Translations under genes and position numbers: made by a program | From: Macrostomum lignano | Lineage: Eukaryota | Direction of reading: 5' to 3' | DNA length: 64,000 nucleotides | NCBI GenBank assembly: GCA_002269645.1 | Contig: NIVC01000344.1 | Span: 1-64,000, forward strand | Notes under the pieces: model-generated | The model's database searches: none | What the model was told of the DNA's origin: nothing | What the model saw: the letters and a program-made list of their open reading frames with translations, nothing else | Shown: positions 23,201-26,838 of the stretch, piece by piece | Numbering within the stretch: position 1 is the stretch's first letter | Layout: every line of letters begins with the position of its first letter

Positions 23201-26200
23201 GCGACACCCGCTGCGCTGCACTCTTCAACGGTACGAATTTCCGGGCCGCCGAGGCCAGCTGGTCGGTCGGCACCACCCAGGGCTTGCGGAGCGGCTACTG
23301 CAGCTACAATGAGAGCAGCCTGCATCCGATTAACTACACTTTCACCGCGTGCACCGCAGCGTAAGTACTTTATGTACCTCATAACATTGCTTACAGCAGA
23401 GGGATGCCTATTCCGCAGACCAGATCCGCACACGCTCACACAGGGTGAACAGCTTCCCTGACTTTCTCATTTTTTAGACAGCATGTACACAATCTGCACC
23501 TTGATGGTTTGGGGCGAGAATCGTAGAAGGAAATTTTCCTGGAGCTCGAACCCCCCCCCCCAACAAGCGGCGCTTGAGTTGGAAGCGCCTTCGTGACGCT
23601 CAGCTTACCGAAGTCGTAAATTATGGAAACTGGTCCAACTGAGGGCTAAAAGCAGAAAAGTCCCCGTATATCTAGATAGGTTTGCACATTTTGAGGCACT
23701 TTCCTAGCCTTCTTTAATACTTCTCTTAGCGCAACCGATTCCTGCATATTAATCTATCATAATTTTATTCTTATTATAGTAAATATTATAAATTCCCTCA
23801 TCCCTCGAACAGCAACCAGAGATGCGGCCTGTTGTACTGCGTCGGAGGCAACATCGCCACCGCACTGCCGATTCCCAAGTGGAAAGGCCTGGAACCAGCC
23901 GACACGAATGTCCTTGATGCCACAATTAGTGGCCAGGTTATTGTTGCAGCCTACGCCATGCACAACCTGAAGTACTCCGGCTACCGGGACCCGGGACTAG
24001 TGCCGAACGGGGCCGAGTGCGGCAGCAATATGGTGAGGCTGGAGGCACACAAACTGGCGAGGCAGATGAGTCTAGACCAGGAGTCGACAAACTCCGAGCC
24101 ACGGGTCACATGCGATTTCGCGATTTCTCTCTTCTCTCATCTTATCTCCTCTCCTTTTTTTCTCCTCTCCTCTCGCCTCTCACCTCTCCTCTCTTCTGTC
24201 ATCTGTCATCTCCTCTTCCTTCTTCTCTCTCCCTCATTAACTCTCCGTTCCATTCTTATCAGGCCCGCAGTAATGGTTTAGATTCTTTATCTGGCCCTTA
24301 AAGTAAAAGTTTGCCGATAATGCCACGTATCTTATTATGCCAAATGGTTGGATAAATAAAAAATGCAAATTCTTTATTTATATATCTCACTGTGTCCCAA
24401 CCAGATGTGCGTGAACTCCCAGTGCATGGCAACTAGCTCAGTCTCGGTCAGCTGCCCCAGCTGCAACGGTCGCGGCAGCTGCGCCCAGAGCGCCCAGTGC
24501 TTCTGCGACACCGGCTATCGGCCTCCGGACTGCCTGCAGGCTGGCGGCGGCGGCTCCCTCATGAACAGGCTGCCAGGTGTGGCCATAGACTGCGCACTCT
24601 TTGTGGACTGGGGGGCGGGGCTAATAATTAAGTCCATCGAAGGTCAGTCGCGTAGCAGCGCTATATCAAATTATCTGGAATGACTATACTGCTTCATCCA
24701 TGGACAATGGGTAACTTTAGTGGACAATTGGTGACTATAGTGGACAATTTGGGTCTATAGTGGACAATTGGTGACTATAGTGGACAATTGGTGGCTATAG
24801 TGGACAATTGGTGACTATAGTGGACAATGGGTGACTATAGTGGACAATTTGTATCTATAGTGGTCGGTGGGTGGCTACATGTATAGTGGACAATTGATCT
24901 GGCTAAATTGATGGCGTGTATTAATCTGGCTAAACTGTTGTTGTTTCAGTGTTTGGTGCTAACAATCGGATTAGGTGTTGCGGAACTGCAACAAATAATA
25001 TAATTTCTATACTTTCGGCTCAAATTTCTTACTTCATTGGATAAACAGTTAAAGAGTAGATTTTTACAATTTTAATTTGAATGACTTATATTCATAAAAC
25101 TTCGGTCATGAGTTATCCAACTCTGTGCAATGGACTATGGACTCTACGCCATCGACTATTGGCCATAGACTATTGGTCATGGACTATGGGTCATATGCTC
25201 TGGGCCATAGACTCTGGGCAATGGACTCTAGGCCAAAGAATATAGGTCATGGACTATGGGTCATATGCTCTGGGCAATGGACTCTGGGCAATGGACTCTA
25301 GGCCAAAGAATATAGGTCATGGACTTGTGTTCTGGGCCATAGACTCCTGGGCCATAGACTATTGGTCATGGACTATGGGTCATATGCTCTGGGCAATGGA
25401 CTCTAGGCTAAAGAATATAGGTCATGGACTATGGGTCATATGCTCTGGGCCATAGACTCTGGGCAATGGACTCTAGGCCAAAGAATATAGGTCATGGACT
25501 ATGGGTCATATGCTCTGGGCCATAGACTCTGGGCAATGGACTCTAGGCCAAAGAATATAGGTCATGGACTATGGGTCATATGCTCTGGGCAATGGACTCT
25601 GGGCAATGGACTCTAGGCCAAAGAATATAGGTCATGGACTTGTGTTCTGGGCCATAGACTCCTGGGCCATAGACTATTGGTCATGGACTATGGGTCATAT
25701 GCTCTGGGCAATGGACTCTAGGCTAAAGAATATAGGTCATGGACTATGGGTCATATGCTCTGGGCCATAGACTCCTGGGCCATTGACTATTGGTCATGGA
25801 CTATGGGTCATATGCTCTGGGCCATAGACTCCTGGGCCATTGACTATTGGTCATGGACTATGGGTCATATGCTCTGGGCCATAGACTCCTGGGCCATTGA
25901 CTATTGGTCATGGACTATGGGTCATATGCTCTGGGCCATAGACTCCTGGGCCATTGACTATTGGTCATGGACTATGGGTCATATGCTCTGGGCCATAGAC
26001 TCCTGGGCCATTGACTATTGGTCATGGAATCTGGGTCATATGCTCTGGGCCATAGACTCCTGGGCCATTGACTATTGGTCATGGAATCTGGGTCATATGC
26101 TCTGGGCCATAGACTCCTGGGCCATTGACTATTGGTCATGGAATCTGGGTCACATGCTCTGGGCCATAGACTCTGGGCAATGGACTCTAGGTCAAAGAAT

Positions 26201-26838
26201 ATAGATCATGGACTATGGGTCATATGCTCTGGGCCATAGACTCCTCGGCCATTGACTATTGGTCATGGAATCTGGGTCATATGCTCTGGGCCATAGACTC
26301 CTGGGCCATTGACTATTGGTCATGGACTCTGGGTCATATGCTCTGGGCCATAGACTCTGGGCAATGGACTCTAGGTCAAAGAATATAGGTCATGGACTAT
26401 GGGTCATATGCTCTGGGCAATGGACTCTGGGCAATGGACTCTAGGCCAAAGAATATAGGTCATGGACTTATGCTCTGGGCCATAGACTCCTGGGCCATAG
26501 ACTATCAGTCATCGGCTATGGGTCATATGCTCTGGGCCATAGACTGGGCCATGGACTCTGATATCCGGACCCTTGGAGCTTTTTTCTGCACTTTACTACA
26601 TCTCTATTAGTAGCGCTTCAACATGATTCGAATACAACGCGCCCATTTTAATTTTCTTACTTTCATTCGAGCAGACAATACAACGGCGCCGACCAGTTCA
26701 GTTGCCACGACAACCACTGTTGCGACTAGGAGCAACGCCAGCGCTAGCAGGGTGGCAAACTGGCTGACTACCGCACTGCCTCTGTTTCTGCTTTCTCTGC
26801 TACTGAAGCAGCAGTCAGCTTTGGTGTGGCAGCTCTAG
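5275..26838 (+). CDS. ADAM-family (M12B reprolysin) metalloprotease-disintegrin, 14 exons, ~785 aa, with one apparent frameshift and a GPI-signal-like C-terminus
   Basis: Exons with GT-AG boundaries and consistent phases: 5275-5371 (signal peptide [27 protein letters not shown]), 5886-6039, 6750-6922 (CFYQGNVE, 1 nt short), 8674-8959 (TCGV switch-like motif, furin-like [14 protein letters not shown]), 9760-9831, 9918-10102, 10879-10963 ([15 protein letters not shown]), 11215-11360 ([15 protein letters not shown]), 12062-12242 ([15 protein letters not shown]), 12701-12931 (disintegrin), 23170-23360 and 23813-24032 (Cys-rich), 24405-24576 (EGF-like), 26675-26838. The domain order is that of non-ADAM10/17-type ADAMs. 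Confidence 0.9.
5536..5874 (+). mobile_element. tRNA-derived SINE with CORE-like domain (copy 1)
   Basis: A box TGGTCTAGTGG and B box GGTTCGATTCC, then CCTTGAGCAAGACACT...CAGCTGTAAAATGGG resembling the MIR/CORE segment. Contains an internal ~30-bp duplication. Two further copies in the window. Confidence 0.8.
6100..6690. repeat. 17-bp minisatellite (TAGTCCCCGATGTCCTC) in ADAM intron 2
   Basis: Visible tandem copies. Confidence 0.9.
7370..8597. repeat. 20-bp minisatellite (TTTCTTGAACCAATGGAGGG), about 60 copies, ADAM intron 3
   Basis: Visible tandem copies. Confidence 0.95.
8988..9556. repeat. (TGTC)n microsatellite preceded by (GTCTTA)n
   Basis: Visible. A related tract occurs at 51341-51640. 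Confidence 0.95.
10243..10480. repeat. ~44-bp tandem repeat (AAGAAGCGTCATGT-based)
   Basis: Visible tandem copies. Confidence 0.8.
10563..10801 (+). mobile_element. Non-autonomous Helitron-like element containing TTAGGG repeats
   Basis: 3' end CTCCCCATCGGGGGCGCAGATTGCTAG|T (short hairpin, then CTAG before a T). Homologous end at 33950. TTAGGG-like units at 10628-10657. The 5' boundary is approximate. Confidence 0.5.
11215..11360 (+). CDS. ADAM exon 8: zinc-binding catalytic motif
   Basis: [48 protein letters not shown]: complete metzincin HExxHxxGxxH plus Met-turn. Confidence 0.95.
11573..11832 (-). mobile_element. tRNA-derived CORE-like SINE (copy 2)
   Basis: Reverse-complement match to 5536-5874, including both boxes and the 3' tail GTTGCACATCTG. 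Confidence 0.8.
12250..12650. repeat. Pyrimidine-rich ~14-bp repeat (CTCTTTGCCCTCCT) in ADAM intron 9
   Basis: Visible. Confidence 0.85.
12701..12931 (+). CDS. ADAM exon 10: disintegrin domain
   Basis: [73 protein letters not shown]. The loop reads xCD (RGICD), not RGD. Confidence 0.95.
12991..23045. repeat. 33-bp satellite array, about 305 near-identical copies, filling ADAM intron 10
   Basis: Unit CTATATAGTATCTCCATGGCTTGAATCATATAT. Variants seen only in edge copies (about 13061, 13094, 23029 onward). Confidence 0.98.
24078..24322. mobile_element. Degenerate hAT MITE with CT-rich interior, ADAM intron 12
   Basis: Left CAGGAGTCGACAAACT after GTCTAGAC; right AGTTTGCCGATAATG; TSD not matched. 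Confidence 0.5.
24700..24895. repeat. 20-bp tandem repeat (TAGTGGACAATTGGTGACTA)
   Basis: Visible. Confidence 0.85.
25130..26555. repeat. Higher-order minisatellite (57-bp unit built from ~10-bp GCCATAGACT-like subunits), last ADAM intron
   Basis: Visible. The 19-aa periodicity in ORF 25746-26204 gives the 57-bp unit. Confidence 0.9.
26675..26838 (+). CDS. ADAM terminal exon: Ser/Thr stalk plus short hydrophobic (GPI-signal-like) end
   Basis: Phase-1 acceptor TTTCATTCGAGCAG. Encodes [54 protein letters not shown], homologous to the last exon of mini-genes A-D. Confidence 0.8.

Follow-up and report, generated by a model that had tools for sequence, protein, structure and literature searches.

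A Macrostomum lignano ADAM gene in which a terminal exon resembling a GPI-attachment signal replaces the exons for transmembrane segment and cytoplasmic tail

How is an ADAM metalloprotease held at the cell surface when its gene ends almost directly after the EGF-like domain? This question is raised by a gene at the beginning of Macrostomum lignano contig NIVC01000344.1 (assembly Mlig_3_7), of which we analyzed positions 1–64000 (64,000 nt, here called the window; identity to the contig was confirmed over positions 1–36838). The gene has fourteen coding exons that span 5275–26838 on the plus strand. ADAMs are reviewed as type I transmembrane or soluble proteins, with cytoplasmic tails of 40–250 residues (PMC4885070). 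The M. lignano gene ends 54 residues after its EGF-like exon 13, and only 10 residues follow the hydrophobic run of the last exon, so that the combination of a transmembrane segment plus a cytoplasmic tail is not present. From its sequence, the tail encoded by exon 14 is best read as a signal for attachment of a glycosylphosphatidylinositol (GPI) anchor, a reading which we hold to be somewhat more probable than not and which we weigh below against three others.

We examined how exon 13 (24405–24576, or to 24642; plus strand) is connected to the terminal coding exon 14 (26675–26838; plus strand). An initial annotation of the locus had proposed the junction 24576>26675, and exactly this junction is found in the gene annotated in GenBank on this contig (BOX15_Mlig000885g3, protein P0124, 541 amino acids, coding sequence 9781–26838). 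Because the gene annotation of Mlig_3_7 was built from RNA-seq (StringTie/TACO), a de novo transcriptome and TransDecoder open reading frames (PMC5730564), the junction reflects transcript evidence by way of RNA-seq-derived models. Exon 13 reads MCVNSQC..., is EGF-like, follows an AG acceptor and ends at a phase-1 donor (CAG|GTGTGG). Exon 14, in phase 1 as well, is preceded by a NAGNAG acceptor (GAGCAG; ...TTCGAGCAG|AC), and the joined product reads ...MNRLP|DNTTAPTSS.... The passage from a phase-1 exon 13 to a phase-1 terminal exon had also been part of the initial annotation and is conserved in position and phase in the paralogues; the residues and coordinates that it gave for the tail proved exact.

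The M. lignano assembly is known to be redundant (PMC5730564), and we found two further assembly copies of the ADAM locus, on NIVC01000202.1 (P0125) and on NIVC01000689.1 (P0001), while two more models, P0126 and P0128, are recorded only in UniRef. P0125 is a complete open reading frame of 771 amino acids with the same junction and tail as P0124. The tail sequence is identical across all three assembly copies, in each of which the join of exons 13 and 14 is annotated; two independent annotations attach exon 14 to the ADAM, and all six public models of the gene use it. Since the junction is annotated in three copies and the reading frame is open in the four paralogous copies of the tail exon in the window (see below), the exon 13/14 tail is more than a chance open reading frame. 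When a roughly hand-spliced protein was compared with the databases, the best match was a M. lignano protein (94% identity), followed by M. lignano paralogues and then by ADAM9/12/15/8-like proteins of other animals (28–38%). We conclude that the locus is a M. lignano-specific ADAM of the ADAM9/12/15/8-like kind.

A second donor of exon 13, also in phase 1, lies 66 nt past the first (24642, GAAG|GTCAGT) and is used in P0001, P0126 and P0128 for splicing into the same exon 14. The extension 24577–24642 adds 22 residues (14 residues, then (G/E)LIIKSIE), which include an unpaired Cys and are absent from all paralogues. In the paralogues the EGF exon stops, likewise in phase 1, immediately behind TNHPP in P0002 and TNQPAFA in P0003, and the insert is missing; 24576 is therefore the donor that has been conserved, and 24642 is an alternative specific to this lineage. 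Read-through past 24642 meets a stop after 13 more codons, and such a read-through into intron 13 is a possible soluble isoform.

GPI signals are described as consisting of four regions, namely a polar linker, small omega residues, a spacer and a hydrophobic stretch (PMC5054108), and the tail of exon 14 shows this four-region layout. It begins with a Thr/Ser stalk of 19 residues containing two N-x-S/T sequons (26675–26730), whose end, TTTTVATR, serves as the polar linker and leads into the small-residue cluster SNASAS (26731–26748). Within this cluster the Ala-Ser pair at 26737–26742, which is invariant in all five copies of the exon, is the candidate omega site, and a triplet of small residues is available there. 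A spacer of four residues, RVAN (26749–26760), is followed by a hydrophobic run of 15 residues (26761–26805) and by the 10 C-terminal residues, the first of which is Lys (26806–26835; stop codon 26836–26838). With omega at the invariant Ser the run starts at omega+7, which lies within the usual spacer of about 5–10 residues before a moderately hydrophobic stretch. The run is weakly hydrophobic, and among its residues are Pro, Ser and two Thr, or a Gln in the case of the small genes described below. We summed Hessa-scale values in a simple additive manner, and on this basis the best 19-mer reached +4.2 kcal/mol in the ADAM tail and +4.0 in the small genes, compared with −2.3 to −4.5 in paralogues with a transmembrane segment. 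At the other end of the protein, a signal peptide of 27 residues followed by SP, as a GPI-anchored protein needs for entry into the endoplasmic reticulum, was recognized by inspection in exon 1 and in P0125; on NIVC01000344.1 it is out of frame with the rest of the protein.

The initial annotation had further stated that a transmembrane plus cytoplasmic domain is lacking. This holds for the transcript models, which end in exon 14, and for the window as a whole: when the C-terminal parts of the paralogues P0002, P0003, P0004 and P0011 were searched against it by tblastn, no match outside the EGF exon was stronger than E=0.1, and we rejected a lost transmembrane or cytoplasmic exon within the window on these grounds. 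Whether the closest paralogues keep these parts, as the initial annotation had proposed to find out, has a divided answer. The more distant P0003, P0004 and P0011 have a strong transmembrane segment and 82–135 cytoplasmic residues, whereas the closest paralogue, P0002 (57% identity), does not. In P0002 a long PTTTT mucin stalk is followed by ...REASQRRCSLALSLLLPSLTVLLAACFS, all encoded by one phase-1 terminal exon, and the hydrophobic stretch completes the C-terminus, which makes it a more classical GPI-type end than the tail of exon 14. The two ends may have arisen independently or go back to a common ancestor. In the 120 ADAM relatives that matched best, a median of 106 residues followed the last transmembrane-like segment, and a hydrophobic segment at most 15 residues from the end was observed only in P0002 and in a fish model of 696 amino acids (P0103, 11 residues after the segment).

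We next turn to the surroundings of exon 14. The exon forms a module together with the last 70 nt or so of the intron before it and a 3' flank of about 500 nt. The ADAM copy of this module (copy A, 26610–27350, plus strand) comprises the ~70 nt of intron, exon 14 and a 3' flank with a conserved block at 27095–27350. The module recurs four more times in the window, each time in a small gene whose last exon is the tail exon: B (28232–29382, minus strand; P0121), C (32899–35039, minus strand; of the type of P0123 of the sister contigs), D (42190–43510, plus strand; P0122 type) and E (46772–47998, plus strand). The last intron of the small genes is in phase 1, and its acceptor aligns with the tandem acceptor GAGCAG of the ADAM. 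No blastn match was found between the module and the loci of P0002 and P0003. In the products P0121 (102 amino acids), P0122 (98) and P0123 (119), the signal peptide MSVRWLLLLSCLAAALLCSEA is followed by a Pro-rich stalk, with a NAT sequon in P0121 and P0122, and by the shared tail. This tail ends in ...DASNNRVANWLIAVLPLFLLFQLLKQQSAMMCQI in gene B and in ...NSASASMLANWLIAVLPLFLLFQLLKHQSALVCQI in gene C, is three codons shorter in gene D (...KQQSALV before the stop) and is present in gene E as well; its consensus in the small genes is ...[DH]AS[NT][NS]RVANWLIAVLPLFLLFQLLK[QH]QSA[LM][VM]CQI. The small genes showed no Pfam domain, and their database relatives were found only at the ADAM locus, in its three assembly copies. 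When we enumerated GT-AG splice models for the 102- and 119-amino-acid products, no solution with two exons was obtained, while 162 and 38 ambiguous solutions, respectively, with three exons were found.

Sequence identity is distributed very unevenly along the five module copies. In the stalk-coding part it amounts to 27–66% (85% for B–D), and from the invariant Ala-Ser codon pair to the stop codon it amounts to 84–97%. The jump occurs exactly at this pair, 7 residues before the hydrophobic run. A GPI signal would be expected to start at this point and a transmembrane anchor would not, and the onset of conservation here favours the GPI reading. The small genes bear on the same point: they combine a signal peptide with a short peptide that is predicted to be glycosylated and a C-terminal hydrophobic signal, an architecture characteristic of small proteins with a GPI anchor, for instance CD24 and CD52. 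Further downstream the identity is 58–63% in the proximal 3' flank for A or C versus the other copies (94–95% among B, D and E) and 84–94% in a distal block of about 243 nt, which is more conserved than the proximal 3' flank or the stalk-coding part. The block lies 250–300 nt downstream of every tail exon (27095–27350, 27869–28126 on the minus strand, 32499–32760 on the minus strand, 43630–43885 and 48120–48375). We considered the block as a structured RNA and as a coding piece and rejected both, as none of 61 predicted pairs was compensatory and no Rfam match was obtained in the first case and no Pfam match in the second. The block copies of A and B lie 518 nt from each other in inverted orientation.

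At synonymous sites the ADAM copy has diverged from the copies in the small genes by about 0.12–0.16, and by this measure the sharing of the exon is far younger than the split of the ADAM paralogues. As to its direction, a donation from the ADAM to the small genes appears at least as likely as the capture of an exon by the ADAM, because P0002, whose exons are laid out alike, already lacks the transmembrane segment and tail, and because the stalk of the ADAM copy is rich in Thr, as ADAM stalks are elsewhere. The small genes may be young genes that arose around the last exon of the ADAM, or else the donors of that exon.

By domain content the gene is a full ADAM, in agreement with the initial annotation: Pfam matches were obtained for Reprolysin (PF01421, E=2e-42), Disintegrin (PF00200, E=5e-21) and ADAM_CR (PF08516, E=1e-12), the latter two over the curated cut-offs. 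The match to EGF_2 (PF07974) was weak (E=0.004, 17.9 bits versus a cut-off of 22.1 bits), with a six-Cys pattern visible in exon 13, and the prodomain profile PF01562 gave no Pfam match in the ADAM. All exons lie on the plus strand. Exon 1 (5275–5371), located by tblastn of P0001 and with the same N-terminus as in P0125, encodes the start codon and the signal peptide. Exons 2 (5929–6039) and 3 (6750–6922, with CFYQGNVEP), likewise located with P0001, encode the prodomain, which ends in exon 4 (8674–8959) with the cysteine switch PKATCGV (8777–8797) and a furin-type RSRR site (8864–8875) before the start of the catalytic domain. The reprolysin catalytic domain continues through exons 5–8 (9760–9831, 9918–10102, 10879–10963 and 11215–11360), which contain the zinc motif of 12 residues (HEXXHXXGXXHD type, 11257–11292) and the Met-turn CIM (11335–11346). 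The catalytic domain is completed in exons 9 and 10 (12062–12242 and 12701–12931), which also encode the disintegrin domain, and exons 11 and 12 (23170–23360 and 23813–24032) encode the ADAM cysteine-rich domain.

In comparison with the sister contig NIVC01000689.1, we observed two deletions of 1 nt each in the copy on NIVC01000344.1, one in exon 2 (GGG to GG, within 5977–5992) and one in exon 3 (CCC to CC, within 6871–6886). They break the open reading frame that begins at the start codon at 5275, so that a single open frame comprises exons 4–14 only; signal peptide and prodomain with the cysteine switch are in frame in the sister copies P0125 and P0001 and out of frame here. The annotated coding sequence begins at 9781 because the two deletions destroy the upstream frame. 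The initial annotation had called the ADAM catalytically intact. The zinc motif, CIM, PKATCGV and RSRR are indeed all present, whereas exons 2 and 3 are each 1 nt short; the word 'intact' holds for the sister copies and not clearly for the copy on NIVC01000344.1. Residual indel errors in this triplicated region are a plausible cause, since the differences between the contigs are dominated by indels (9 indels and no substitutions between NIVC01000344.1 and NIVC01000689.1 in one block of 3.2 kb), as in the residual long-read errors of an assembly made with PacBio/Canu and polished with Pilon; the alternative is a real pseudogene copy. If the deletions are real, the copy on NIVC01000344.1 is inactive and our statement on a GPI-anchored ADAM applies to the two sister copies.

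Several observations weigh against a GPI signal in exon 14. The hydrophobic run does not complete the C-terminus, as it does in the textbook layout (PMC5054108), and is instead followed by 10 residues beginning with Lys. The sequence KQQSA is conserved in all module copies, and the N of SNASAS belongs to an N-x-S sequon, which narrows the choice of the omega site. Moreover, an uncharged stretch of 18 residues bracketed by Arg and Lys could act as a short transmembrane anchor. The protein would then be a tail-less type I membrane ADAM, in which the 18-residue segment forms a short transmembrane helix with a cytoplasmic stub of 10 residues and no lipid is attached. Consistent with this, the Arg before and the Lys right after the run make up a positive-inside, stop-transfer pattern, and four of the five copies of the module keep the C-terminal 10 residues. 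However, only 15 residues are hydrophobic, the segment has a Pro at its centre as well as several polar residues, and the Hessa sum is far from that of the transmembrane segments of the paralogues. Copy D tolerates the loss of the last three of the 10 C-terminal residues, and conservation starts at the Ala-Ser pair, outside the putative helix. Nor are the 10 residues after the run disqualifying for GPI attachment, because the GPI signals of Thy-1 and placental alkaline phosphatase also carry 6–8 polar or charged residues past the hydrophobic run. We regard a short transmembrane anchor as unlikely. The initial annotation had left the choice between a GPI-anchored and a tail-less ADAM; the layout of the tail, its low hydrophobicity and the GPI-type end of P0002 now speak for the former, with attachment itself predicted from these features and a short transmembrane helix retained at the weight just given.

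Two further points against the GPI reading concern whether a functional product is made at all. P0124 starts at a Met of exon 5 (ATG at 9781), inside the catalytic domain and without signal peptide and prodomain, and the pN/pS ratio (nonsynonymous to synonymous differences) of the tail is about 1 (34 codons, 0–4 synonymous changes per pair), with too few changes to prove selection at the codon level. Together with the two deletions in exons 2 and 3 and with scattered ADAM pseudo-exons at 44.5 and 51.1–51.8 kb, they would fit a functionless 3' end, that is, a truncated small-gene copy spliced onto a decaying ADAM in a duplication-prone and repeat-rich region; NIVC01000344.1, at least, would then yield no product or a product without function. 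Yet exons 4–14 form one open frame with all catalytic motifs, the sister copy P0125 is complete and has the same tail, the tail is identical in the three assembly copies, and two independent annotations attach exon 14 to the ADAM; the indel-dominated differences between the contigs are typical of residual errors after PacBio sequencing and Pilon polishing. We consider a functionless end improbable. The ADAM might also be essentially secreted, with a soluble main product formed by retention of intron 13 or by rapid release, as in ADAM12-S, ADAM9-S and ADAM28s. ADAM9, 12 and 28 are known to have soluble splice variants (PMC4885070), and the early stop after read-through at donor 24642 would provide for one here. 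With the read-through end in none and exon 14 in all of the six public models, we find this very improbable.

In the transcript models, exon 14 follows the EGF-like exon immediately and takes the place of the transmembrane segment and cytoplasmic tail of canonical ADAMs. Under the GPI reading, which we prefer, the signal peptide would direct the ADAM into the endoplasmic reticulum, where GPI transamidase would cleave at the invariant Ala-Ser pair (about 26737–26742) and attach the lipid anchor. The product would be an active, furin-activated metalloprotease-disintegrin on the outer leaflet, and its lack of a cytoplasmic tail would leave it without tail-mediated regulation. A more far-reaching reading, which we hold to be slightly less probable than not, is that M. 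lignano has the first natural GPI-anchored ADAM, in two paralogous genes, and that a terminal exon, self-contained together with its 3' flank, was shuffled within 20 kb, with the ADAM as either its recipient or its source; joined to a signal-peptide exon, the exon would also make GPI-anchored peptides of about 100 amino acids. Phrase searches of the literature for a natural GPI-anchored ADAM returned nothing beyond engineered constructs and a loosely worded review sentence, and a search by the gene identifiers of the ADAM locus returned no paper. The term GPI is absent from a structural review of the ADAM family of 124,000 characters (PMC4885070). The shared-exon module, the GPI-type paralogue P0002, the alternative donor 24642 and the frameshifts in exons 2 and 3 are new with respect to the initial annotation.

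Intron 10 is filled by a 33-nt satellite (TCTATATAGTATCTCCATGGCTTGAATCATATA; 12991–23058, about 305 copies, 99% match), two frames of which stay open over more than 3,300 codons. Its length on NIVC01000689.1 is about 1 kb, and the array is either collapsed on this sister contig or truly variable. Intron 13 is mostly made up of minisatellite arrays (25140–26560) with periods of 57, 70 and 171 nt. A tRNA-like sequence in intron 8 (11759–11828, minus strand; Rfam RF00005, 35.7 bits, E=8.5e-4) may be a tRNA gene or a tRNA-derived repeat. Isolated ADAM pseudo-exons lie among (GTCT)n-type microsatellites at 44474–44620, 51137–51316 and 51708–51779; one is an exon 3-like copy (71% amino acid identity) and two are exon 4-like copies (85–88%), remnants of partial ADAM duplications. 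Between the small genes B and C we found open reading frames of retroelement type (29885–30166 and 31329–32285, both on the minus strand) with gag-like matches (PNMA, E=5e-7, and a zinc knuckle) and a weak match to a retroviral aspartyl protease, probably a fragment of a long terminal repeat retrotransposon. A THAP zinc-finger reading frame (36759–37010, plus strand; E=3e-5), possibly a domesticated or transposon-derived gene, is followed by a reading frame of 274 codons without a Pfam match (37237–38058). Exons of a rhodopsin-family G-protein-coupled receptor (7tm_1) are located on the minus strand at 52333–52842 and 54727–55032, and motifs including NPVIY suggest an amine-type receptor. Finally, a 42-nt tandem array at 58889–60190 comprises 43 register copies with 60–99% identity (in-phase copies 69–99%), and three of its minus-strand frames are open for about 400 codons and rich in Pro, Leu and Ser.

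Much of ADAM regulation has been attributed to the transmembrane segment and cytoplasmic tail, through trafficking, SH3 and PKC inputs and iRhom or tetraspanin partners. If our reading is true, a lipid-anchored and tail-less ADAM would show what the ectodomain is capable of without these inputs, and transgenesis and RNA interference are available in M. lignano (PMC5730564). The anchor is entirely predicted, M. lignano is a niche model and the copy in the window may be broken. The shared-exon module would be a concrete example of a membrane-anchor swap between genes, as well as of tiny secreted or anchored genes arising beside a large gene, and it would represent a recent and traceable switch of anchor type by exon sharing between unrelated genes.

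In order to place the locus among known systems, we compared it with five groups of proteins. It shares with canonical ADAM9/12/15/19/8 (family M12B) the reprolysin motif HEXGHXXGXXHD with Met-turn, the disintegrin and cysteine-rich domains and a Ser/Thr linker, as well as an EGF-like domain by its six-Cys pattern and, in frame in the sister copies, the signal peptide and the prodomain with cysteine switch and furin site. Its best matches outside Macrostomum are ADAM9/12/15/8-like proteins with 30–36% identity. Unlike canonical ADAMs, it has neither a normally hydrophobic transmembrane segment nor a cytoplasmic tail of the reviewed length (PMC4885070). In ADAM12-S, ADAM9-S, ADAM28s, ADAMDEC1 and the snake venom P-III metalloproteinases, the transmembrane and cytoplasmic part has likewise been lost by an alternative or novel terminal exon or by truncation while the ectodomain was kept. 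These proteins end without a hydrophobic segment and are secreted, whereas exon 14 supplies a hydrophobic C-terminal signal, and because of this the M. lignano ADAM should, by prediction, stay membrane-bound.

The GPI-anchored metzincins offer a parallel for the predicted anchor. MT4-MMP (MMP17), MT6-MMP (MMP25) and leishmanolysin GP63 are zinc metzincins that are GPI-anchored on the outer leaflet after a stalk and have no cytoplasmic domain. They belong to families M10 and M8 and have no disintegrin/cysteine-rich/EGF module, and their anchoring has been shown experimentally, whereas that of the M. lignano ADAM is predicted; GPI-anchored MMPs are also mentioned in PMC5187769. For the small genes, the closest likeness is to CD24 and CD52, in which, too, the signal peptide is followed by a stretch of a few dozen residues that is rich in Pro, Ser and Thr and carries an N-glycan sequon, and then by a hydrophobic C-terminal signal; there is no sequence homology, and the small-gene family was found only at the M. 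lignano locus. The role of the terminal exon itself resembles that in NCAM-120 versus NCAM-140/180, CD58/LFA-3 and Fc-gamma-RIII, in which the last exon decides between a lipid and a peptide anchor of an otherwise identical ectodomain. In these proteins, as proposed for the M. lignano ADAM, the identity of the terminal exon sets the type of anchor. The difference is that the window holds no alternative exon encoding a transmembrane segment, and that the switch in M. lignano would lie between paralogues and not in alternative splicing.

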